This document shows, one piece after another, positions 3,370-63,208 of a stretch of DNA of 64,000 nt. How positions within the stretch are numbered: position 1 is the first letter of the stretch; the number at the start of each line of letters is the position of its first letter. Position numbers and translations under genes: made by a program. The notes beneath the pieces were generated by a model. That model was not told the DNA's origin. It was given only the letters and a program-made list of their open reading frames with translations, and ran no database searches. The stretch lies in sequence record LR756502.1; one strand, 5' to 3'.

Positions 3370-3393
3370 TTAGGATAAAATAAAAACAATTAG

Positions 3394-3401
3394 TATATTT
3401 G
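3394..3401 (+). promoter_or_regulatory. Bacteroidota sigma-A -7 element TAnnTTTG (representative copy)
   Basis: Also at 5603, 16798, 20897, 36526, 49897, 54202, 58860, 61975 and others, often with TTTG about 20 nt upstream. Confidence 0.8.
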
Positions 3402-3419
3402 TAATATAAATAAGAAGAA

Positions 3420-3555
3420 ATGAAAACAACTATTAAAAATACAAGTTCACGTAGTCGCTCGAGTAAATCGGGTGAGGTTCGACTGTATTCATAATAGTTA
3501 GTATAAACATATTGTGTAAACCCTCGAACTTAACCGTTTGAGGGTTTTTTGTTTT
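3420..3555 (+). promoter_or_regulatory. Attenuator 2: leader MKTTIKNTSSRSRSSKSGEVRLYS (3420-3494) + terminator (3518-3555)
   Basis: Ser x7, Arg x3; GGTTCGA (3476-3482) pairs with TCGAACT (3524-3530); followed by Arg/Ser tRNAs. Confidence 0.8.
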
Positions 3556-3560
3556 AAAAT

Positions 3561-3632
3561 GGCTTCATCGTCCAATGGATAGGACACTCCGCTACGAACG
3601 GAGAAATTTGGGTTCGAGTCCCTATGAGACTA
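3561..3632 (+). tRNA. tRNA-Arg(ACG)
   Basis: CTCCG-CTACGAA-CGGAG. Confidence 0.85.
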
Positions 3633-3708
3633 CAAATGAATATCACAGGAGAGTGTATTAAGTTGCAACCCGCGTAAATTGTGAAGGACAATCTGTGATA
3701 TTCAAATT

Positions 3709-3792
3709 GGAAGAGTAATTAAGCTGGCGCTTGACCTAGTCTTGAAAACTAGCGGTACCTACGGGTATGGGGATCGATACCTCACTCTTCCA
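3709..3792 (+). tRNA. tRNA-Ser(UGA)
   Basis: CTAGT-CTTGAAA-ACTAG, V-arm. Confidence 0.85.
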
Positions 3793-3797
3793 CAAAT

Positions 3798-3884
3798 GGA
3801 AGGTTGGCAGAGTCCGGCTTATTGCACCAGTCTTGAAAACTGGAGGTCCTTCGGGATCCGTGAGTTCGAATCTCACATCTTCCT
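3798..3884 (+). tRNA. tRNA-Ser(UGA)
   Basis: CCAGT-CTTGAAA-ACTGG, V-arm. Confidence 0.9.
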
Positions 3885-3889
3885 CTAAT

Positions 3890-3975
3890 GGAGATCAATC
3901 TACTCTGGTGAGTAGCGGCGTTTGCTAAACGTTCGGCACGTTCAATCGTGTGGGGTTCAATTCCTCTGGTCTCCT
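3890..3975 (+). tRNA. tRNA-Ser(GCU)
   Basis: GGCGT-TTGCTAA-ACGTT, V-arm. Confidence 0.85.
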
Positions 3976-4030
3976 CAATCATTAGTGGGGAAAGGACATC
4001 TTTAAGGGGTGAGGTGGGTTCCCTTAAATT

Positions 4031-4115
4031 GGAAGATAAGCTAATCGGGTGATTAGCCACGCTTGGAAAGCGTTGGGTACGTTCAATCGTATGGGCTTCG
4101 ATGCTCTATCTTCCT
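4031..4115 (+). tRNA. tRNA-Ser(GGA)
   Basis: ACGC-TTGGAAA-GCGT, V-arm. Confidence 0.85.
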
Positions 4116-4120
4116 CATAA

Positions 4121-4192
4121 GGATCCATCGTATAATGGATATTACTACCGTCTTCGAAACGGTAAATCGCAGTCCGACTCTGCGTGGGTCCT
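4121..4192 (+). tRNA. tRNA-Arg(UCG)
   Basis: ACCGT-CTTCGAA-ACGGT. Confidence 0.85.
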
Positions 4193-4225
4193 CTTTTAAA
4201 TTATTTTTAGTATATTTGTATTTAA

Positions 4226-4528
4226 ATGGAAAATATTGTAATAGGCATATGTCCTATTTGTGAAAGAGAAATGTGGAAAGATAAGTTTGTCAATAGACAT
4301 CACTTTCTTCCAAAATCGAAAGGTGGGAGAGAAACAGAGTGGCTTCATAAAATTTGTCATAGGAAAATTCATTCTATTTTTACAAACACAGAGTTAGCAA
4401 AAGAGTATAATAACCCGGAGGTTGTAAGGGCTCATCCAGAGATTGATAGATTTATTAAATGGATATCTAAAAAGGATCCAGATTTCTATGATGGAAATAC
4501 AACACATAATAAAAAAGGAAGACTATGA
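4226..4528 (+). CDS. HNH endonuclease family protein
   Basis: CPIC..NRHHFLPKSKGG..LHKICHRKIH. Confidence 0.8.
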   Translation: MENIVIGICPICEREMWKDKFVNRHHFLPKSKGGRETEWLHKICHRKIHSIFTNTELAKEYNNPEVVRAHPEIDRFIKWISKKDPDFYDGNTTHNKKGRL

Positions 4529-5657: not shown

Positions 5658-5765
5658 ATGAAAACTTTGCACACATATAAAAACGTGATTGACTGGATGT
5701 AAATATCCCGGCTACATAATTATATGTATTCCCAGTCAATAAAAATTGACTGGGATTTTTATTTT
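5658..5765 (+). promoter_or_regulatory. Attenuator 3: leader MKTLHTYKNVIDWM (5658-5702) + terminator (5729-5765)
   Basis: ATTGACTGG (5688-5696) is the exact complement of terminator arm CCAGTCAAT (5732-5740); operon contains RNA ligases and HisRS core. Confidence 0.65.
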
Positions 5766-5988: not shown

Positions 5989-6186
5989 ATGGCAACACAT
6001 ACAAATACACTAACCTCACATCATGGTGAGAGTAGAACATCTAGAGCAGATAAAATGTCTGGTTGGATATCAGAATATAAAAGAATATTTGGTAAATCGG
6101 GAACATCGATGAAAACTGCCAAGACAATAAGTAATAGGAAAAGAAGAATGTTCTTAAAGAACAAAAAAAATTGGACAAAATTATGA
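5989..6186 (+). CDS. Small basic hypothetical protein
   Basis: 65 aa ORF, overlaps next gene. Confidence 0.55.
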   Translation: MATHTNTLTSHHGESRTSRADKMSGWISEYKRIFGKSGTSMKTAKTISNRKRRMFLKNKKNWTKL

Positions 6187-6836
6187 AATCATACCCGAGT
6201 ATAGACTATTTTGATAAAGGACTGTTTGGTGATACTGTTTGGGTATTCGACAAATTGGATGGATCAAATCTTAGAATGGAGTGGAACCGTAAGAGAGGGT
6301 GGTATAAATTTGGAACAAAGTCTGTAATGATTGATGTTAGTAATCCAGATTTTGGAGAAGCTATTCCTATATTTATGGAGAAATATTCCGATGATTTAGA
6401 GAGAGTATTTAAGAAAGAATATTCCAATGTTGAAAGCATTGTTGTTTTCTGTGAGTTTGTTGGAGACAACTCATTCGCTGGTCAGCATCTTGCTTCAGAT
6501 AAGAAGGATGTAGTTCTTTTTGATGTTAATCTTTATAAGAAAGGATTTATACATCCAAAAGATTTCCTCGATAACTTCGGACATCTCCATATACCCAAGT
6601 TGGTATATAAAGGAGAATATAATGACGACCTTATCAAAGATGTTAGAGATAATATCTGGGGTCTAAAAGAAGGTGTAATATGTAAAGGAGTTAGAAAAAC
6701 AAAAGGTGACCACATAGTCTGGATGACTAAGATTAAAACCATCGAATGGTTAAATAAAGTAAAAGAAAAATATGGAGAGAAGGCTCTCCTTGAAGAATTA
6801 AACAATAATAAAAAACTATTAAATTATGGAAATTAA
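6171..6836 (+). CDS. RNA ligase-like nucleotidyltransferase (Rnl2-type core)
   Basis: Motif I KLDGSN, CEFVG, LFDV, EGVICK, KIK. Confidence 0.75.
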   Translation: MDKIMKSYPSIDYFDKGLFGDTVWVFDKLDGSNLRMEWNRKRGWYKFGTKSVMIDVSNPDFGEAIPIFMEKYSDDLERVFKKEYSNVESIVVFCEFVGDNSFAGQHLASDKKDVVLFDVNLYKKGFIHPKDFLDNFGHLHIPKLVYKGEYNDDLIKDVRDNIWGLKEGVICKGVRKTKGDHIVWMTKIKTIEWLNKVKEKYGEKALLEELNNNKKLLNYGN

Positions 6837-7458
6837 ATTAGAATCAACGTATAAAGGAACTCGAATATTATTCGCTGAATCAGCTAAAAGAAAAAGAGAT
6901 ATATTAAATAAGATGATTGAAGTTCTTGAGTCCTATGGGTATCAGGAAATTATGATTCCTATTATTCAAAAACAAGAAACATTCCAATCAAAGGTGGGTG
7001 CTGAAAATCAAAACATGATGTTTAACTTCAAAGATAGAGGTGATCGTGATTTATGTTTATCCCCAGAGTATACCGCAATCGTTCAACAACTTGCTAAAGA
7101 GAAATTCAAATTCACAAACAATGTGAAGATGTTTTATATCGGTGAGTGTTTTAGAGGAGAAAATACACAAGCTGGAAGATGGAGACAATTTACTCAGTTT
7201 GGTGTTGAGATTATAAACCCAACAAAGGACTATTCTGATGAGATGGTTGAAATTGCTGGAAAACTAATTGAGTTAGTTACAAAAAATTATGAGACAAACC
7301 TAGATGCAACTCGTGGACTTGACTACTATAAAGGTGGTAAAGGATTTGAAATAGCTTGTCCAGAATTAGGTTCATCAAAGCAAGTTTGTGGCGGTGGTAC
7401 TTATGAAGGTGGTTTGGGATTCGCAGTGGGTGTTGATAGACTACTATTATGCAAATAA
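6826..7458 (+). CDS. hisS: Histidyl-tRNA synthetase catalytic core only (210 aa)
   Basis: LSPEYTA, motif 2 FRGENTQAGRWRQFTQFGVE, GLDYY, motif 3 GFAVGVDRL; no anticodon-binding domain. Confidence 0.8.
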   Translation: MEIKLESTYKGTRILFAESAKRKRDILNKMIEVLESYGYQEIMIPIIQKQETFQSKVGAENQNMMFNFKDRGDRDLCLSPEYTAIVQQLAKEKFKFTNNVKMFYIGECFRGENTQAGRWRQFTQFGVEIINPTKDYSDEMVEIAGKLIELVTKNYETNLDATRGLDYYKGGKGFEIACPELGSSKQVCGGGTYEGGLGFAVGVDRLLLCK

Positions 7459-7721
7459 GAGAAATAAAAATATCACTCCAGCAAAAGGACGGATATCTCT
7501 ACTTCAGAACTGGATCAGATCCAGTTGAAGTTGAAGTGAAGATAGAATTTGGCACTGCTAAAAATCTGAGGGATTTTTTACATAGTGGTGAAAAACTATG
7601 CAGTGTAGATAAAAATCTTGTGAAGATAATAAAAATTAATAAAATGAGACATACCTCTGTTGAGGCAACAATACAAAAAATTACTCTAAGAGAGTATAAT
7701 TTAGAAAGGTTACTATTATGA
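7449..7721 (+). CDS. Hypothetical protein with C-terminal tag (LREYNLERLLL)
   Basis: ORF track. Confidence 0.55.
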   Translation: MQIREIKISLQQKDGYLYFRTGSDPVEVEVKIEFGTAKNLRDFLHSGEKLCSVDKNLVKIIKINKMRHTSVEATIQKITLREYNLERLLL

Positions 7722-8431
7722 ACACAAAGAAAAGATTAAAGAATTTAAGAAATATCGCACCTGACTATCCGAGGATACCTCATTTAGACAAGTCTATATC
7801 AAATATGACACATGATGATATTCAACTTGAGTTACCGATTCAATTCCCATTTACTTGTTGGGTACAGGAGAAGATAGATGGCGCAAACATTGGTGTCTCT
7901 TGGACAAGCGGTCCACTTATTAGAAATAGAAACAACATTCTTAAAAAGGGATATATTGAGAAGGAAACTCCAGCTAAACTTCAGTTTAGACCGGCTTGGA
8001 ATTGGATACATGAGCATGGAAAAGAGATTAGAGATATCTCCAAAGAGATTATGTCACCTATAACAATATATGGTGAGTGGATGATAGCTAAGCATTCAAT
8101 TGAATATAATAAGCTAAGTGATTGGTTTATTGCATATGATATTTATTCTGCTGAGGATGGAAGATTCTTCGCTCCTGATATTGTTGATAGTATCTTATCA
8201 AAAACAAGTATTAAATATATCAAACCAAGTAAAGTCACCTTTGATAATATTGACGAAATTGTTGAGTACTCTGAGAGAAAATCAGAATATAGAGATGGCG
8301 TTAGAGAGGGTATTGTTATTAAGGTATCAGATGGTAGATTCGTTGGTCAATCATTTAAGGTGGTAAATAGACACTTTGTTCGTAGAGAGGACTTCAATAC
8401 CATTGATATAATTAAGAATAAATTATCCTAG
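7718..8431 (+). CDS. Second RNA ligase-like protein
   Basis: YPRIPHL, QEKIDGANIG, IYGEW, FIAYDI, EGIVIK, FKVV. Confidence 0.75.
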   Translation: MNTKKRLKNLRNIAPDYPRIPHLDKSISNMTHDDIQLELPIQFPFTCWVQEKIDGANIGVSWTSGPLIRNRNNILKKGYIEKETPAKLQFRPAWNWIHEHGKEIRDISKEIMSPITIYGEWMIAKHSIEYNKLSDWFIAYDIYSAEDGRFFAPDIVDSILSKTSIKYIKPSKVTFDNIDEIVEYSERKSEYRDGVREGIVIKVSDGRFVGQSFKVVNRHFVRREDFNTIDIIKNKLS

Positions 8432-16570: not shown

Positions 16571-16675
16571 TGCGGGGTAGGGAAGTGGTCATCCCGAGAC
16601 GCTCGTTTTTGATTCTTAAATGATGAAGAAGTGAGATAACGTTTAGATCGTTGGTTCGAATCCAACCCATCGCTA
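16571..16675 (+). tRNA. Initiator-Met-like tRNA interrupted by a 31-nt insert in the anticodon loop
   Basis: AGACG-CTC[31 nt]ATAA-CGTTT; intact D- and T-arms; U1:U72 mismatch. Confidence 0.65.
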
Positions 16676-16834: not shown

Positions 16835-16909
16835 TGCGGAGGGGTGAAACGGAATTCATGTAAGTCTCATAAACTTTTTCGATAATTGGTTCGACTCCAA
16901 TCTCCGCTA
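16835..16909 (+). tRNA. tRNA-Met(CAU), initiator-like (1:72 mismatch)
   Basis: AAGT-CTCATAA-ACTT, TGCGGAG/CTCCGCT. Confidence 0.8.
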
Positions 16910-16947
16910 CAAAAGAATAAAAACAAAATATTAATAAATTAGAAATA

Positions 16948-17100
16948 ATGAATAGATTTACTAACATAGAAACAATAGGGTACACAGGGTATGAGGGCGC
17001 GTATAGCGAACTTTTAGTCAGACCTTTGTCTATGTTATAATGTAAAATATTATACAATTTGATAAAATCCAGTCTGATTAATTTCAGACTGGATTTTTTG
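16948..17100 (+). promoter_or_regulatory. Attenuator 4: leader MNRFTNIETIGYTGYEGAYSELLVRPLSML (16948-17040) + terminator (17064-17100)
   Basis: Tyr x3, Glu x3; TAGTCAGAC (17015-17023) pairs with GTCTGATTA (17072-17080); followed by Glu/Tyr tRNAs. Confidence 0.8.
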
Positions 17101-17160: not shown

Positions 17161-17245
17161 GCTACGGTATGCAAATTGGACTAAGCGCCCAGACTTTCAA
17201 TCTGGTCACGAAAGTGGATTGCGGGTTCGAATCCCGTCCGTAGTA
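17161..17245 (+). tRNA. tRNA with Glu(UUC) anticodon, Leu-like body and variable arm
   Basis: CCAGA-CTTTCAA-TCTGG; V-arm CAC-GAAA-GTG. Confidence 0.8.
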
Positions 17246-17259
17246 CAAATATAAAGCAC

Positions 17260-17655: not shown

Positions 17656-17797
17656 ATGAAAAATTTACATAACATATCAGTTGGAGTTATAGCGATAGGC
17701 GCGGGGAGCGTTTGTCTGTGGCTGAACTATGTTTCGTAAATAGTAAAATATTTATCATAAACTAACCCAGTCACAAAATGACTGGGTTTTTTATTTA
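17656..17797 (+). promoter_or_regulatory. Attenuator 5: leader MKNLHNISVGVIAIGAGSVCLWLNYVS (17656-17739) + terminator (17764-17797)
   Basis: Ile ATA x3, Gly x3, Ala x2; TGTGGCTG (17717-17724) pairs with CAGTCACA (17768-17775); followed by Ile(UAU)/Gly/Ala tRNAs. Confidence 0.8.
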
Positions 17798-18177: not shown

Positions 18178-18804
18178 ATGTATCATACAATTTATAAAAT
18201 AACAAATATACTAAATGATAAAATTTATATAGGCAAACACTCAACAGAAAATTTAGACGATAGTTATATGGGGTCTGGTTCTTATATTAGAAGATCCATA
18301 AAAAAATATGGAGTTGAGAATTTTAAGAAAGAGATTTTGTTTATATTTGATAGCTCAGAAGAGGCATATAAAAAAGAAATAGAAATTGTTAATGAAGACT
18401 TTGTATTAAGAACAGACACTTATAATATTATAACTGGAGGTGATTCATTTGAGGCAATTAACTCTAATGAAGAACTTAGAAAGGAAAAAAATAAAAGGGC
18501 AGCAGTATCAATGAATAGAATTAATTGGACAAATCCTGAGTTTATAAAAAGAAACCATGATAGAATGTCTGAACAAAATAAGAGATTATTTAATGAGGGA
18601 ATACTTAAAGCACCTGATTGGACAGGTAGAAAACACAAGGATGAAACCAAAATTAAACAAAGTATTTCAGCTAAAAAAAGAATTAGAGAGAAAAATAAAC
18701 ATTGTTGGGTATATCATTACGTAGATGGTAATAAAAAAATAAAAATATCCGAAATAGATACATATCTAATCAATGGATGGATAAAGGGAAGAATAATGAA
18801 ATGA
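18178..18804 (+). CDS. GIY-YIG (Seg-like) homing endonuclease inside the tRNA array
   Basis: IYKITN..KIYIGKHST..YMGSG; NUMOD3-like GRKHKDETK; true start ATG 18178. Confidence 0.9.
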   Translation: MYHTIYKITNILNDKIYIGKHSTENLDDSYMGSGSYIRRSIKKYGVENFKKEILFIFDSSEEAYKKEIEIVNEDFVLRTDTYNIITGGDSFEAINSNEELRKEKNKRAAVSMNRINWTNPEFIKRNHDRMSEQNKRLFNEGILKAPDWTGRKHKDETKIKQSISAKKRIREKNKHCWVYHYVDGNKKIKISEIDTYLINGWIKGRIMK

Positions 18805-18821
18805 AGGAAAACATTAAACCC

Positions 18822-18898: not shown

Positions 18899-18970
18899 GC
18901 AGTATTGGTGTTTAATGGTAGCATATCTGGTTCCATCCAGTAGGCGTCGGTTCGAATCCGGCACACTGCT
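18899..18970 (+). tRNA. tRNA-Gly-like with 6-nt anticodon loop
   Basis: CTGG-TTCCAT-CCAG; Gly-type GCAGTAT acceptor, U73. Confidence 0.6.
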
Positions 18971-18978
18971 CAAATTAT

Positions 18979-26699: not shown

Positions 26700-27133
26700 A
26701 AGAAATACCTTAGTTTTAAATCTAATTAGTCTTAGTAATAATACGATTGATATTCTTCCTCTTCTTTCTTTTCTCCACTTTCTATATTTTCTAAACTTTC
26801 TCTCCTTAAAGGCCTGGACAACCTCATATTCTTCGTGTTTAATTAGATTACTCATAAATACATTTAGAAGTCTAGTTCTTCCAGCATAATTGAAATTACC
26901 GTCATGAACTCTCTTATCATATAATAGGAATAGAGCCTCTATCTTCTTATTTATTGCCTCGTCTTTGTGAAACCTCTTACTTTTATATTTTGTTATACTA
27001 AACATAGGCTATTTTATTTTATTTATACGTTATATAATCCAAACAAGTTATCACCTATTATTATGCGGTAGATTTTAGATATAAGCGGTATAAACCTCGT
27101 ATTATATATTAAAAATATAATATATAAATCATT

Positions 27134-29157: not shown

Positions 29158-29327
29158 ATGAAAACAATGAATTTAAATATGAATCTAAACACACTGACAG
29201 TGGTGAATAATACGTTATGTATTAGACCTTGTGAGGGTTTTGATCTATTTAATGATTTGTAGTATGGCATAAACATTAATAAAGGATAATCAAAACCCTC
29301 AGTCAAAAACTGAGGGTTTTTTGTTTT
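29158..29327 (+). promoter_or_regulatory. Attenuator 6: leader MKTMNLNMNLNTLTVVNNTLCIRPCEGFDLFNDL (29158-29262) + terminator (29292-29327)
   Basis: Asn x7, Leu x6, Thr x4, Val x2; TGAGGGTTTTGAT (29232-29244) is the exact complement of ATCAAAACCCTCA (29289-29301). Confidence 0.85.
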
Positions 29328-29344
29328 AAATAAAATTTAATAAA

Positions 29345-29548
29345 ATGGAACCGGAATTAGAAGAATTAATTATAAGAGAAGAAATGATTGAAGAAATGAA
29401 AAAACTTTTTACAAAGGGACAAACAAACCCAAGTGCAATAACCTCTTTGATGTATATGAAAGGATTCAAGGGTAGATTTATGGAGATTAGAAAAATTGCA
29501 GAATACCAGTATAAGGTTTATACTATGGAAATAAAAAGAAAACAGTAA
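29345..29548 (+). CDS. Hypothetical protein, first gene after attenuator 6
   Basis: ORF track. Confidence 0.55.
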   Translation: MEPELEELIIREEMIEEMKKLFTKGQTNPSAITSLMYMKGFKGRFMEIRKIAEYQYKVYTMEIKRKQ

Positions 29549-29554
29549 AAATAC

Positions 29555-29633
29555 GGATAAGTAGCTATTAACTGGATAGAGCTACTCGTTGTTAGCGAGA
29601 GGGTTGTGGGTTCGAATCCTACCTTATCCGCCA
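29555..29633 (+). tRNA. tRNA-Asn(GUU)
   Basis: CTCG-TTGTTAG-CGAG, G73, encoded CCA. Confidence 0.85.
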
Positions 29634-30557: not shown

Positions 30558-30637
30558 GCCAATGTGGCTCAGCGGCGACAGCACCGCTTTTGTAAAGCGG
30601 AACACAAACAGCGGGGGTTCGAGTCCCTCCATTGGCT
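30558..30637 (+). tRNA. tRNA-Thr(UGU) with 12-nt unpaired variable loop
   Basis: CCGCT-TTTGTAA-AGCGG. Confidence 0.85.
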
Positions 30638-30642
30638 CAAAT

Positions 30643-30959: not shown

Positions 30960-31394
30960 ATGGTAAAATATGACAAAGAGGAATTTATAAGTGTTTGTGA
31001 GGACAGTCCTACAATGGCTAGAGCGGCTTCTAAATTAGGTATTCATTTTAATACCTTTAGAAGGATAGCTGTTAAGTTGAATTGTTATAGAACAAATCAG
31101 TCCGGAAAGGGTTTAACTAAAAAGAGCGATAGAGGAACACCTTTGTCAGAAATTCTTGAGGGAAAACATCCACAATTTCAATCATTTAAATTGAAAAATA
31201 AATTGATAAAGGAAGGAATAAAAGAGAATAGATGTGAGGTTTGTAATATAAGTGAATGGAATGGGAAAGTGATAAATTGTGAACTAGACCATATAGATGG
31301 TAATAGCAGAAATCACAGATTGGAAAATCTAAGAATACTGTGTCCAAATTGTCACTCACAAACTGATACATTTAGAGCAAAGAATATAAAATAA
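30960..31394 (+). CDS. HNH endonuclease inside the tRNA array
   Basis: CEVC..ELDHIDGNSRNHRLENLRILCPNCH. Confidence 0.9.
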   Translation: MVKYDKEEFISVCEDSPTMARAASKLGIHFNTFRRIAVKLNCYRTNQSGKGLTKKSDRGTPLSEILEGKHPQFQSFKLKNKLIKEGIKENRCEVCNISEWNGKVINCELDHIDGNSRNHRLENLRILCPNCHSQTDTFRAKNIK

Positions 31395-31610
31395 ATGGAG
31401 TATCTATGTGATAATGCAAGACATCTAGTTTGTAAACCTTATTCAATTGAGAATCTACATAAGATGGCCGAGGAACTAAACATTAAGAGATGTTGGTTTC
31501 ATAAGAATCATTATGATATTCCAAAAAGAAGAATAGATGAAATTACAATTAAGTGTAAACTAATTTCATCTAAAGAGATAGTAGATATTATAAATATTGA
31601 TATAGCTTAA
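31395..31610 (+). CDS. Small conserved protein (DUF4031-like)
   Basis: HLV..SIENLHKMAEEL.IKR.WF..HYDIP. Confidence 0.55.
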   Translation: MEYLCDNARHLVCKPYSIENLHKMAEELNIKRCWFHKNHYDIPKRRIDEITIKCKLISSKEIVDIINIDIA

Positions 31611-49957: not shown

Positions 49958-50119
49958 ATGAAAAACTTAATCTTAAATATCGCAATTCAAGTACAACGTC
50001 AAGTTGTTGTCGATCAGGATCAACCGGATACGACTGAGGCTAATTGCGATTTTATAAGAGAGTAAAATAATACTTGAATTATACAAACCCAGTTAGTCTA
50101 TGATTAACTGGGTTTTTTT
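49958..50119 (+). promoter_or_regulatory. Attenuator 7: leader MKNLILNIAIQVQRQVVVDQDQPDTTEANCDL (49958-50056) + terminator (50085-50119)
   Basis: Asp x4, Gln x5, Pro; GGCTAATTG (50038-50046) pairs with CAGTTAGTC (50090-50098); followed by Pro/Asp tRNAs. Confidence 0.75.
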
Positions 50120-50752: not shown

Positions 50753-50822
50753 GGTGCTGTCGTCTAATGATAGGATGCTCCCATTGGAGGGAGTGATGTA
50801 GGTTTGATTCCTAACTGTACCG
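50753..50822 (+). pseudogene. tRNA-like gene with 6-nt anticodon loop (ATTGGA)
   Basis: CTCCC-ATTGGA-GGGAG; D- and T-arms present. Confidence 0.5.
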
Positions 50823-50833
50823 CAAAAATAATA

Positions 50834-50936: not shown

Positions 50937-51052
50937 ATGACAACTTCATTTCAGCAACAACAGCAACAACAAATTAATCGAACAGATTGATGTGGAATGA
51001 TATTGTTTAAATATTACACCCGTTAGTCTGAGGAGATTAACGGGTTTTTTAT
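50937..51052 (+). promoter_or_regulatory. Attenuator 8: poly-Gln leader MTTSFQQQQQQQINRTD (50937-50990) + terminator (51018-51052)
   Basis: 7 consecutive CAG/CAA codons; CAGATTGATG (50983-50992) pairs with CGTTAGTCTG (51021-51030); followed by 4 tRNA-Gln and glnS. Confidence 0.9.
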
Positions 51053-51130: not shown

Positions 51131-51214
51131 TGCGGAATCCCATAATGGCATTGGTCCTGACTTTGAATCAGGTGGAATGAAAATTCTGTGTAGGTTCGAA
51201 TCCTACTTCCGCAT
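51131..51214 (+). tRNA. tRNA-Gln(UUG) with long variable arm
   Basis: CCTGA-CTTTGAA-TCAGG; V-arm GGAAT-GAAA-ATTCT. Confidence 0.85.
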
Positions 51215-51219
51215 CAAAT

Positions 51220-62159: not shown

Positions 62160-63098
62160 AAAAAGTCTACCCCTTCGTCCTCGATGGGTAATATCCAAAT
62201 AAAGACGCAAATAGGATGTTTCAGACTTTGTACCAAGCTTCGACTTCGGTTGTTGTGTAGGTAGGGCGGCTTATAGTCCTTAAATAAACCTCGAAAGGGG
62301 GATAAAGTGAGTATCATTGCTAAATGATATTTGCGGTTTGAACTGAAAGGTTTGAGCTCGAGTAAGCAAGCGAAATACCACAAAATCTGTAGTAATGAGG
62401 GTAACTCCGTAGTGAAACGATTTTGTGATTGGGTGAACGTAGGTCACTTGATTGACTTCGGAAGAAGAACAGGAATAATTCGTAGGAATTTTGTGAGAAA
62501 TATCGGCTTAACCGGCTAGTATGATTGCGAGTTCTAATTCAAGAGATGTCTTAAAGTTGAAAGACAATTCTTCTACCAGGTGGTGCTGTTGAAGAACATT
62601 AATCTGACTACCAAGTTGGTAGGTATCATCGCAAGGTGGTATCGTGATGAAGAAATCTTAAAGAATTGTGATGGAGGCATCACACAGAGTAGTTCAGTAT
62701 TTTGTCTGTCAAAAACGGATGAAGCTGAGAGGAGACCACTACTTTGACTTAATCTACAAGCACAAAAAATTTACTTATGATGTAAAAACTATAACTAAAT
62801 CAAAAGTGTTTCCTAGTTATCAATGAAAATTGACTACTTAGCCGTGAGTTGTTCACGGTCACATTAAGCCCGAAAGGCGGATGTGATTTCAGAGAAAAGC
62901 TTATAGAGGGTCGAACCTCTAATCAGTTCGCAAGACTGAATAAGTGGAGTAAATGGAGAATAGTTGATAACTTAAGGAGTGGTTGGTCTAACTAACCGTC
63001 ATTGACAAGTTACTACTCAAAAGGTAGTGGATAGATTTGGGAATAAATAATCCAAACAGAGGCTTGTTGTTTTAGGATGTAATCTCAGTCCTTTTTTT
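62160..63098 (+). ncRNA. Large (~0.9 kb) structured ncRNA, GOLLD/ROOL-class candidate
   Basis: No credible ORF, higher GC, many hairpins (CCTC-GAAA-GGGG, GAG-GGTAA-CTC, TATCATC-GCAA-GGTGGTA, GTGATG/CATCAC, CCGTGA/TCACGG, AGAGG/CCTCT), flanked by tRNAs, ends in U-tract. Family not verified. Confidence 0.7.
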
Positions 63099-63100
63099 AT

Positions 63101-63173
63101 GGCCTTTTCGTCTAGTGGTTAGGACGAATATCTTTTCAGATATTAAACAGCGGTTCGAATCCGTTAAAGGCTA
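63101..63173 (+). tRNA. tRNA-Glu-type gene with 8-nt anticodon loop
   Basis: GGCCTTT/AAAGGCT; AATAT-CTTTTCAG-ATATT. Confidence 0.75.
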
Positions 63174-63177
63174 CAAC

Positions 63178-63208
63178 AACCCACCGATCTGGTGGGTTTT
63201 TTTATTTT
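63178..63208 (+). terminator. Intrinsic terminator
   Basis: AACCCACC-GATCT-GGTGGGTT followed by T-tract. Confidence 0.85.

Follow-up and report, generated by a model that had tools for sequence, protein, structure and literature searches.

Why would a giant phage place a tiny Ser/Arg-rich reading frame and a transcription stop signal directly in front of its Ser and Arg tRNA genes? The question is raised by a stretch of 64,000 nucleotides from record LR756502.1 (hereafter the window, meaning this whole stretch), in which a 24-codon ORF is followed by a strong intrinsic terminator and, five bases after its T-run, by the tRNA cluster Arg(ACG), Ser(UGA) x2, Ser(GCU), Ser(GGA), Arg(UCG). An earlier note had observed that the leader samples many synonymous Ser and Arg codons matching this Arg-Ser4-Arg cluster, several of them GC-rich codons unexpected in AT-rich DNA, and had suggested sensing at the level of isoacceptors. 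We find that the observation itself is correct. The interpretation is partly supported: the evidence favours a sensing leader for the downstream tRNAs, whereas the narrower claim, sensing of each isoacceptor, is only partly supported. By examining the composition of the leader, its predicted RNA structures, its homologues and the parallel modules in the window, we propose that these tRNAs are probably made only when ribosomes stall for lack of them, by a classical ribosome-mediated attenuator that controls tRNA genes instead of biosynthetic genes (we put this reading at roughly 0.75, from sequence and comparison alone).

The leader ORF and its tRNA cluster

All features of the unit lie on the plus strand. 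A promoter-like region (3390-3413) holds TATATTTG (3394-3401), fused to TAATATAAATA, a variant of the TTT(T/G)TAATATATA motif that precedes every leader ORF. The Bacteroidota -7 box has the consensus TAnnTTTG, which TATATTTG fits. A Bacteroidetes host has been predicted for the >634 kb phages (Al-Shayeb 2020). The motif is conserved in an alignment of six homologous sequences, and TTTAATATATA occurs 29 times in the window against 13.9 expected, lying ahead of leaders at 912, 17623 and 29139.

The leader ORF (3420-3494, MKTTIKNTSSRSRSSKSGEVRLYS) starts with an ATG 19 nt after the TAnnTTTG-type box, is preceded by an A-rich stretch that is a plausible initiation region, and ends at TAA 3492-3494, followed by TAG. 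Its codons are ATG AAA ACA ACT ATT AAA AAT ACA AGT TCA CGT AGT CGC TCG AGT AAA TCG GGT GAG GTT CGA CTG TAT TCA TAA; those listed in the earlier note are exactly present (AGT x3, TCA x2, TCG x2, CGT, CGC and a later CGA). As that note had proposed, codon usage was compared with the background. Ser and Arg make up 10 of the 23 post-start codons, against 12% in long ORFs (P=1.6e-4), and codons readable by the cluster's anticodons are 10 of 23 against 8.5% (P=7.9e-6). Of 381 short ORFs (15-40 codons) in the window only 2 reach 40% Ser plus Arg, and this is one of them. The three Arg codons are all CGN, which is 14.6% of Arg codons in long ORFs (P=0.003), in a genome that uses AGA for 76% of Arg; TCG is 2 of 7 Ser codons against 2.9% (P=0.016). 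The GC content of 3444-3482 is 51%, against 32.7% for the whole window.

The terminator (3518-3555) consists of a 12-bp stem (AAACCCTCGAAC / GTTTGAGGGTTT, 3518-3547) with a 6-nt loop and the T-run TTTTTTGTTTT (3545-3555). It is the second-ranked terminator-like site in the first 20 kb, with 12 pairs and a hairpin energy of -16.9 kcal/mol, and it is present in all homologues. tRNA-Arg(ACG) (3561-3633) starts 5 nt after the T-run, leaving no room for a promoter of its own. It is followed by a tRNA-Ser(UGA) of unusual shape (3709-3793; 8-bp acceptor stem, 6-bp D stem, 4-bp T stem), a canonical class II tRNA-Ser(UGA) (3798-3885), a tRNA-Ser(GCU) with a long D stem (3889-3975), a tRNA-Ser(GGA) with a 7-bp D stem (4030-4116) and tRNA-Arg(UCG) (4121-4193), the last gene of the unit. 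The next gene (ATG at 4226) has its own TATATTTG box at 4211-4218. ARAGORN with default settings calls only 3561-3633, 3798-3885 and 4121-4193, missing three of the four Ser tRNAs; relaxed thresholds add Ser(UGA) 3709-3793, Ser(GCU) 3892-3974 and Ser(GGA) 4030-4116, but also produce many false calls inside coding regions, which were ignored. Rfam scores 3709-3791 and 3889-3975 on the tRNA-Sec model, at 46 and 48 bits, and all six fold as cloverleaves. The Arg-Ser4-Arg order given in the earlier note is therefore correct, and the end of its interval (4192) is the end of the last tRNA.

Conservation of the leader

Homologous Ser/Arg leaders, each with a terminator and an Arg(ACG)/Ser cluster, occur in LR745206 and in IMG/VR and metagenome contigs, giving 13 distinct sequences (individual sequences are cited below by handles such as L018). 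The frame, the length (21-25 codons) and the Ser/Arg run are kept in these sequences, which show coding-type evolution: the alignment gaps placed inside the ORF are 3 nt long, while the spacer after the stop has 1-3-nt gaps, and Ser is kept at homologous positions through AGY<->TCN switches that need at least two base changes. The peptide sequence outside the cognate residues and the antiterminator strand is poorly conserved. A tblastn search with the GlnRS adjacent to the Gln cluster found no further megaphage in the phage collection beyond LR745206.

Predicted alternative RNA structures

Two mutually exclusive folds are predicted for the leader RNA. When the 3' arm of the terminator is left out, the six close homologues first examined all fold into a hairpin inside the ORF (P1) plus a long helix joining a segment of the ORF (r2) to the terminator's 5' arm (-13 to -19 kcal/mol), whereas the full-length RNAs fold into the terminator; among the 13 sequences, L020, L019, L018 and L025 do not adopt the antiterminator fold. 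P1 (3455-3475) pairs TCGCTCGA (3455-3462) with TCGGGTGA (3468-3475) across the loop GTAAA, and is built from the codons CGC TCG ... TCG GGT GA. It is predicted in all six close homologues both with and without the terminator, and a G-C pair becomes A-U in LR745206, but it is not conserved in L018 or L025; it may act as a pause hairpin. A further helix, P0 (3429-3498), appears only in the full-length fold and pairs 3429-3443 (ACTATTAAAAATACA) with 3484-3498 (TGTATTCATAATAGT, which includes the stop codons), sequestering the inner antiterminator strands. It has 13 pairs in the RNAalifold consensus of six homologues, 2 of them with changes on both sides, and is present in most of the single-sequence MFE structures.

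The 5' strand of the antiterminator outer helix, r2 (3475-3482, AGGTTCGA, codons GAG GTT CGA), lies 10-17 nt upstream of the stop codon, a place that is fixed among homologues. Its partner r3 (3524-3531, TCGAACTT) is the inner part of the terminator's 5' arm plus two loop bases, such that pairing of r2 with r3 excludes the terminator. On 10 distinct r2/r3 variants from homologues on megaphage contigs, 92.5% of cells are paired and 4 of 8 pairs change on both sides (9 cells), as in AGGTTCGA/TCGAACTT, AGATTCGA/TCGAATCT, TAATCCGA/TCGGATTA and GAAAATTCGA/TTGAATTTTC; the covariation score exceeds all 500 shuffles and collapses when the partner is slid by one column. We chose the r2/r3 registers by hand, which favours the structure. 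This gap-free alignment replaced MAFFT/RNAalifold covariation counts, which are blurred by misaligned indels in the terminator arm of LR745206 and L004. Taken alone, the best duplex between the window's leader and the terminator arm is no better than dinucleotide shuffles give (z=-1.0, 48 of 300; -2.0 in LR745206 and -1.4 in L004), and the case for it accordingly rests on position and covariation. By contrast, the Asn and Gln leaders have 9-11-bp antiterminators with z = -3.5 to -5.3, and the same tracking of the two strands is seen in the His/Phe leader (ATTCGA/TCGAAT, GTTCGG/CCGAAC, ACTTGG/CCAAGT).

Parallel modules in the window and in relatives

The same order of promoter, short ORF, terminator and tRNAs recurs at least seven times in the window. 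Besides the Ser/Arg module, an HKHF..KWF leader precedes His/Phe/Trp/Lys tRNAs, an E/Y leader precedes Glu/Tyr, an I/G/A leader precedes Ile/Gly/Ala, an N/L/T/V leader precedes Asn/Leu/Thr/Val/Ile, a D/Q/P leader precedes Pro/Asp, and a QQQQQQQ leader precedes four Gln tRNAs (P=1.5e-8). The true pairing of seven leaders with seven clusters scores 72 of 188 codons against a permutation mean of 27, and is the single best of 5040 permutations. Two of the seven leaders are, however, only weakly enriched for their own cluster (Glu/Tyr P=0.11 and Pro/Asp P=0.30), and in the Asn/Leu unit a 67-codon ORF lies between the terminator and the tRNAs. More distant relatives have different leader/cluster combinations that still match: the F/D/E/A leader MRTFANIFDFAFEFAAEADCAPARSTIVKS precedes Phe Phe Glu Asp Glu Glu Asp Asp .. 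Ala (P=1e-4), and an L/V/F leader precedes Phe/Leu/Val tRNAs. As an internal control, the tRNA-Met genes sit directly behind promoters with no ORF and no terminator; the leader module is therefore not simply how this phage starts every tRNA transcript.

A model of demand-driven tRNA supply

We hypothesize that region 3390-4193 is one transcription unit controlled by leader-peptide transcription attenuation. Sequence and comparison establish the order of the parts, the absence of space for a second promoter, the enrichment of the leader in codons read by the downstream tRNAs, and the two mutually exclusive (predicted) folds; translation of the leader, the geometry of the ribosome footprint, and read-through in response to tRNA shortage are inferred, and presuppose that transcription and translation are coupled in the presumed Bacteroidota host or for a phage polymerase. 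In this model, when aminoacyl-tRNA-Ser and -Arg(CGN) are plentiful, the ribosome would run to the stop codon at 3492 and cover r2 and the inner antiterminator strands; the terminator would then form and RNA polymerase would stop at the T-run, so that no tRNA is made. When supply is short, a ribosome stalled at roughly 3444-3462 within the Ser/Arg run (3444-3470; AGT TCA CGT AGT CGC TCG AGT AAA TCG), the proposed stall zone, would disrupt P0 and P1 while leaving r2 free to pair with r3, and polymerase would read into the tRNA genes. Without translation, P0 (as an anti-antiterminator) and P1 would form and the terminator would win, giving default termination. The output would be the very tRNAs whose shortage caused the stall, a demand-driven feedback on decoding capacity, although such an attenuator would also respond to amino-acid starvation, where making more tRNA does not help. 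The unit would be one member of a paralogous set, each tuned to its own tRNA cluster, with more in related megaphages.

Sensing of individual isoacceptors is only partly supported. Arg codons in the Ser/Arg run are always CGY and never the genome-preferred AGA; across leader families the Arg codon follows the downstream tRNA-Arg (CGY or CGC where Arg(ACG) follows, AGA where Arg(UCU) follows); and the Ile/Gly/Ala leader uses ATA x3 before tRNA-Ile(UAU), while the Asn/Leu leader uses ATT before tRNA-Ile(GAU). On the other hand, CGC, both TCG codons and CGA lie inside conserved helices (P1 and the antiterminator strand), so their GC-richness has a structural explanation; CGA (3480) and the last TCA (3489) lie too far 3' to act as stall codons in an attenuation geometry; the window's leader has no TCC or TCT codon for Ser(GGA); and Ser uses only 3 codon types, about what genome usage predicts. 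The idea in the earlier note that the later CGA is a sensing codon was rejected as unlikely, because CGA is the core of the antiterminator strand in every homologue.

Alternative explanations

The alternative that stays closest to the model, though we consider it doubtful, is an attenuator that senses Ser/Arg charging at the amino-acid level only, as classical attenuators do, with CGC, TCG and CGA present because they build P1 and the antiterminator strand. CGC and TCG (3456-3461) do form the 5' strand of P1, TCG GGT GA (3468-3475) its 3' strand, and CGA (3480-3482) the core of r2, and leaders in general carry more CGN than the genome does, including leaders with no Arg tRNA downstream (CGA in the His/Phe and Gln leaders, CGT in the Pro/Asp leader). 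However, in L018 and L025 the P1 hairpin is different, yet the Arg codon in the run is still CGT or CGC, and Arg codon choice follows the downstream tRNA-Arg in three independent leader families (CGY with Arg-ACG, CGC in leader L040 with Arg-ACG, and AGA with Arg-UCU), as Ile ATA against ATT follows tRNA-Ile UAU against GAU. In the window, all 72 codons that match at the amino-acid level are also decodable by the anticodons actually present, for which genome codon usage gives a probability of about 0.146^3 x 0.437^3 x 0.85, roughly 2e-4.

Readings without a link between leader translation and the tRNAs fare worse. The ORF and hairpin might be an independent small gene or a dead-end transcript, with the tRNAs transcribed by read-through from far upstream or by a phage polymerase that ignores intrinsic terminators; huge phages can encode their own transcription factors or polymerases (sigma factors are mentioned in the paper that released this genome), and all genes here lie on one strand, such that long read-through transcripts are conceivable. 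This improbable view explains neither why leader composition tracks the downstream tRNAs in 7 of 7 window modules and changes with them in distant relatives, nor why a segment of the ORF co-varies with the terminator arm. An RNA-only switch, T-box-like or another riboswitch with an incidental ORF, would be consistent with the conserved alternative structures (P0, P1, antiterminator and terminator) but is very unlikely: Rfam scans of the window and, permissively, of 3380-4230 found only tRNAs, GOLLD and sub-threshold hits whose aligned parts are essentially the terminator (rnk_leader 26.9 bits against a gathering score of 50, the trpB motif 25.2 against 59, the L10 leader 20.1 against 44). No Rfam family reaches threshold in 3380-3560. 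No T-box hit was found at the gathering threshold over the window or at E<=1 in 3380-4230, the leader is only about 135 nt long with no specifier-loop or T-box sequence, and its evolution is coding-like. Least likely is that the peptides are themselves the functional products, for example small Ser/Arg-rich effectors whose gene the terminator simply ends. The conserved ORF with its promoter and plausible initiation region would allow this, but the peptides are low-complexity, they differ between paralogues precisely in the residues that match the downstream tRNAs, and the tRNAs have no other promoter.

Implications

tRNA genes are controlled by promoter strength, growth rate and the stringent response, and are not known to be controlled by a sensor of their own decoding performance. 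A leader peptide whose codons are read by the tRNAs encoded just downstream would be a direct feedback from ribosome stalling at codon X to synthesis of the tRNA for X. It would also explain how phages with 40-70 tRNA genes decide when to express them, would give a compact, portable part for sensing the supply of a specific tRNA, and would allow tests of whether phage tRNAs respond to tRNA depletion or to anticodon-nuclease defences. The comparative signal (seven matched leader/cluster pairs in one window, different matched pairs in relatives, and compensatory antiterminators) is already strong enough to design decisive reporter experiments. More tentatively, megaphages of this clade may run a codon-resolved, demand-driven tRNA supply network of at least 7-8 paralogous attenuators per genome, each measuring stalling at exactly the codons served by its own downstream isoacceptors and switching on those tRNA genes only when that decoding capacity fails. 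The trigger could be decay of host tRNAs during infection or cleavage of tRNAs by host anticodon nucleases, which would make the network both a new regulatory logic for tRNA genes and a built-in counter-defence sensor. Full-text literature searches, which did not cover subscription-only papers, found no description of leader-peptide control of tRNA genes, and the paper that released this genome mentions neither attenuators, leaders nor terminators.

Comparison with known systems

The unit most closely resembles the leader-peptide attenuators of enterobacterial amino-acid operons (trpL, hisL, pheL, leuL, thrL, ilvL), which have a short ORF with a run of regulatory codons, a pause-type hairpin inside or next to the ORF, an antiterminator whose 5' strand a terminating ribosome masks, an intrinsic terminator directly ahead of the regulated genes, and default termination when the leader is not translated; multi-amino-acid leaders such as thrL and ilvL parallel the Ser+Arg leader. 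What is new is that the regulated genes are six tRNAs rather than genes for amino-acid biosynthesis, transport or synthetase proteins, to which the described attenuators known to us are confined; this does not affect the mechanism. In addition, the element lies in a phage of about 642 kb and probably works in Bacteroidota, it occurs as a paralogous series of at least 7 modules in 64 kb, its output would directly replenish the sensed molecule, and its Arg and Ile codon choice matches the anticodons encoded downstream. The pheM leader controlling pheST (phenylalanyl-tRNA synthetase) in E. coli likewise applies leader-peptide attenuation to a component of the translation apparatus and senses the supply of the cognate charged tRNA, but its product is a synthetase protein rather than the tRNA, with one amino acid and one operon in a cellular genome. 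T-box riboswitches share conditional read-through of a terminator ahead of translation-related genes in response to the state of tRNA, but bind uncharged tRNA directly and need no translation, whereas the element here behaves as a translated ORF. Finally, the idea that the choice of synonymous codon in a leader sets what the attenuator senses is that of isoacceptor-selective codon choice (Elf and Ehrenberg 2005, PMC1183508), and rare codons (CGY, TCG) are used here; that work concerns sensitivity to amino-acid limitation in biosynthetic operons, while here the codons coincide with the anticodons encoded immediately downstream.

Genomic context and the Ser/Arg leader

The window is identical to positions 372001-436000 of LR756502.1, an uncultured phage genome of 642,428 bp and one of the freshwater megaphages released with Al-Shayeb et al. 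2020, a study that predicts Bacteroidetes hosts for its genomes larger than 634 kb. The window has a GC content of 32.7%. ARAGORN with default settings finds 44 tRNA genes in it, and Rfam and ARAGORN with relaxed thresholds find more; several ORFs resembling aminoacyl-tRNA synthetases are also present. A GOLLD RNA (62685-63091; Rfam score 275 bits) is followed immediately by a tRNA-like gene and a terminator (63101-63205), and the structured region upstream of it (about 62300-62685) may be the 5' part of GOLLD.

An ORF of 24 codons runs from an ATG at 3420 to a TAA at 3492-3494 and encodes MKTTIKNTSSRSRSSKSGEVRLYS, using the codons listed in the earlier note. It is followed by a 12-bp GC-rich hairpin (3518-3547) with a T-run (3545-3555), the second-ranked terminator-like site in the first 20 kb, and the first tRNA gene begins five bases after the T-run. 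The cluster consists of Arg(ACG) (3561-3633), Ser(UGA) (3709-3793), Ser(UGA) (3798-3885), Ser(GCU) (3889-3975), Ser(GGA) (4030-4116) and Arg(UCG) (4121-4193). Three of the Ser genes are missed by default ARAGORN and are recovered at relaxed thresholds, by Rfam on the tRNA-Sec model, and by folding. Compared with codon usage in 64 long plus-strand ORFs, the leader is enriched in codons that the cluster can read (10 of 23, against 8.5%; P=7.9e-6); its three Arg codons are all CGN, which make up 14.6% of Arg codons (P=0.003) where AGA alone makes up 76%; and TCG accounts for 2 of its 7 Ser codons, against 2.9% (P=0.016). Only 2 of 381 short ORFs in the window are this rich in Ser and Arg. The observation made in the earlier note is real and is not a product of chance.

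Parallel leader modules in the window

The same layout recurs at least seven times in the window: a motif TTT(T/G)TAATATATA, about 10 nt, an ATG, a short ORF, a strong terminator, and then tRNAs within a few bases. Besides the leader MKTTIKNTSSRSRSSKSGEVRLYS, which precedes Arg, four Ser and Arg tRNAs, MRTINKHKHFSKLNKWFSNHRFEAKAFC precedes His, Phe, His, Phe, Trp and three Lys tRNAs; MNRFTNIETIGYTGYEGAYSELLVRPLSML precedes Glu, Tyr, Glu, Tyr and Glu; MKNLHNISVGVIAIGAGSVCLWLNYVS precedes Ile(UAU), three Gly and two Ala; MKTMNLNMNLNTLTVVNNTLCIRPCEGFDLFNDL precedes two Asn, Leu, Val, Ile, Thr and further tRNAs; MKNLILNIAIQVQRQVVVDQDQPDTTEANCDFIRE precedes two Pro and three Asp; and MTTSFQQQQQQQINRTD precedes four Gln tRNAs. 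These six further modules of leader ORF, terminator and tRNA cluster lie at 930-1016, 16948-17040, 17656-17739, 29158-29262, 49958-50065 and 50937-50990, each enriched in the amino acids of its own tRNAs, and the clearest of them is MTTSFQQQQQQQINRTD before the four tRNA-Gln genes. When the leader codons decodable by the leader's own cluster were counted, the true pairing gave 72 of 188, whereas the mean over all 5040 re-pairings is 27 and no re-pairing does as well. The four strongest plus-strand terminator-like sites in the first 20 kb include all four that follow leaders there. In the Asn/Leu unit of this phage a 67-codon ORF (29346-29548) sits between the leader's terminator and the first tRNA, while in the related phage LR745206 the tRNA follows the terminator directly.

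By contrast, tRNA-Met genes (16572-16674 and 16838-16910, and 26871-26943 in the related sequence L002) lie directly behind promoter motifs, with no leader ORF and no terminator; the gene at 16572-16674 carries an intron-like insertion of about 30 nt. A module of the leader type also occurs ahead of protein genes (5658-5760): its ORF encodes MKTLHTYKNVIDWM, and its segment ATTGACTGG equals the 3' arm of the terminator at 5730-5755. The ORFs downstream of this module include two RNA-ligase-like proteins (6171-6836 and 7718-8431) and a HisRS-like protein (6826-7458), which may be a regulated tRNA-repair or translation operon. Within the His/Phe/Trp/Lys unit, a mini-ORF encoding MKTKRKYKR (1590-1660; MKTKLKYKR in the relative, L001 3547-3610) lies directly before the three or four Lys tRNAs and is followed by a hairpin with no T-run, and it may be a second, different kind of Lys-codon sensor.

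Unusual tRNAs and insertions within the clusters

Three of the Ser tRNAs (3709-3793, 3889-3975 and 4030-4116) have an 8-bp acceptor stem, a 6-7-bp D stem with a 4-nt loop, and a 4-bp T stem, a shape resembling tRNA-Sec or allo-tRNA, yet they carry ordinary Ser anticodons, and standard tRNA finders miss them. tRNAs for Lys, Glu, Asn, Thr and Gln (1661-1747, 1759-1847, 1849-1930, 17161-17246, 29555-29633, 30558-30638 and 51131-51215) are 79-89 nt long and usually lie next to a normal-length copy with the same anticodon, although bacterial tRNAs for these amino acids are normally short; the one that was folded, 1661-1747, shows a long variable-arm hairpin. For three tRNA-like genes (18899-18971, 50753-50823 and 63101-63174) ARAGORN reports a two-base anticodon, consistent with a 6-nt anticodon loop.

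Between tRNA-Arg(ACG) and the first tRNA-Ser lies a conserved 75-nt hairpin RNA (3634-3708; also at 1968-2040 in the related sequence L008), whose 12-bp stem shows compensatory changes in L008 and whose folding gives z=-3.4, and which is absent from LR745206; a further spacer spans 3976-4030. Homing-endonuclease-like ORFs (GIY-YIG, HNH) are inserted between tRNA genes inside the clusters, at 18179-18805 and 30970-31395 in the window and at L007 1136-1840 and L008 2721-3530 in related sequences, each with its own TTTAATATATA-type motif.

Conservation in related phages

The 634,780-bp phage LR745206.1 (about 78-80% identity) has a homologue of every one of the seven leaders, each with the same cognate enrichment. 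A search with the small HNH-like protein encoded just downstream of the Ser/Arg unit (4226-4525) gave 6 IMG/VR loci and 45 metagenome loci. Across these there are 13 distinct Ser/Arg leader sequences, for example MKTINNTSKSSSRSSSMSEIRLYS, MRTILNILVSSSRSSSGHVIRLCL, MKMVNTNTSSSRSSNSSKIRS and MKNINTNTSSSRSSENSSKIRS, each followed by a terminator and an Arg(ACG)/Ser cluster. They evolve like coding sequence: the frame and the double stop are kept, the alignment gaps placed inside the ORF are 3 nt long while the spacer after the stop has gaps of 1-3 nt, and Ser is retained through switches between AGY and TCN codons. More distant contigs carry other combinations of leader and cluster that still match: MRTFANIFDFAFEFAAEADCAPARSTIVKS precedes Phe Phe Glu Asp Glu Glu Asp Asp Ser Ala Gly Ala (16 of 29 codons cognate, P=1e-4), an L/V/F leader precedes Phe/Leu/Val tRNAs, and an L/V/C leader precedes Cys/Val/Phe tRNAs. 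Leader composition therefore tracks tRNA content as both change.

Predicted RNA structures

The full-length leaders are predicted to fold into the terminator, a hairpin inside the ORF termed P1 (3455-3462 with 3468-3475), and an AU-rich helix termed P0 that joins codons 4-8 (3429-3443) to the stop-codon region (3484-3498). When the 3' arm of the terminator is left out, the six close homologues first examined all refold such that P1 stays and a long antiterminator forms, with energies of -13 to -19 kcal/mol. The outer helix of this antiterminator pairs r2 (3475-3482, AGGTTCGA), a segment inside the ORF and 10-17 nt before the stop, with r3, in the 5' arm of the terminator (3524-3531, TCGAACTT). 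Among the 13 distinct leader sequences folded subsequently, however, four (L020, L019, L018 and L025) do not adopt this fold when the 3' arm is absent.

On its own, the r2:r3 duplex of the window is no better than shuffled sequence gives (z=-1.0). Across homologues, however, it stays at the same place and changes on both strands together, as in the pairs AGGTTCGA / TCGAACTT, AGATTCGA / TCGAATCT, TAATCCGA / TCGGATTA and GAAAATTCGA / TTGAATTTTC. On a gap-free alignment of 10 variants, for which the registers were chosen by us, a choice that favors the structure, 92.5% of cells pair and 4 of 8 pairs change on both sides; the covariation exceeds all 500 shuffles and collapses when partners are slid by one column. 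The His/Phe leader shows the same tracking with three unrelated terminator stems, and the Asn and Gln leaders have antiterminators of 9-11 bp with z = -3.5 to -5.3.

Inferred mechanism of control

By analogy with the trp and his attenuators, we infer that a ribosome reaching the stop at 3492 would cover r2 and the inner antiterminator strands, such that the terminator forms and the tRNAs are not transcribed. A ribosome stalled in the Ser/Arg run (about 3444-3462) would keep P0 and P1 open but leave r2 free; r2 would then capture the 5' arm of the terminator as it emerges, and polymerase would read through into the tRNA genes. Without translation, P0 and P1 would form and the terminator would win. 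In this view the logic is that of trp and his with a different output, the product being the set of tRNAs whose shortage caused the stall. The parts, their order, the codon enrichment, the alternative folds and their covariation are shown by the present sequence analysis, whereas translation of the leader, termination at the T-run and any response to tRNA supply are inferred.

Possible isoacceptor specificity

The earlier note proposed that the variety of synonymous Ser and Arg codons in the leader, several of them GC-rich, reflects sensing at the level of individual isoacceptors, and this interpretation is only partly supported. In its favor, the Arg codon in the run is CGY in all 13 variants, including L018 and L025, in which P1 is different, and across independent leader families the Arg codon follows the tRNA-Arg encoded downstream (CGY/CGC with Arg-ACG, AGA with Arg-UCU). 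Similarly, Ile is encoded by ATA before tRNA-Ile(UAU) and by ATT before tRNA-Ile(GAU), and in the window every one of the 72 codons that match at the amino-acid level is also readable by an anticodon actually present, which has a probability of about 2e-4 as calculated from genome codon usage. On the other hand, CGC, both TCG codons and CGA lie in P1 or r2, so that structure alone could explain their GC-richness; CGA and the last TCA are too far 3' to act as stall codons; no codon specific to Ser(GGA) is present in the leader of the window; and other leaders also carry some CGN. We consider tuning at the isoacceptor level plausible but unproven.

Comparison with known systems

The feature is real, conserved and statistically solid, and it is best explained as a leader-peptide attenuator of a tRNA operon, one of a paralogous family in megaphages. 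Full-text literature searches, which did not extend to subscription-only papers, and a search of the paper that released the genome found no description of leader-peptide attenuation of tRNA genes. The element is not a T-box, and it matches no curated Rfam leader. It meets the sequence-level criteria of a leader-peptide attenuator, with the exception of the kind of gene regulated, which here is a set of tRNA genes. The nearest logic known to us is that of pheM-pheST, in which a leader peptide controls a synthetase.
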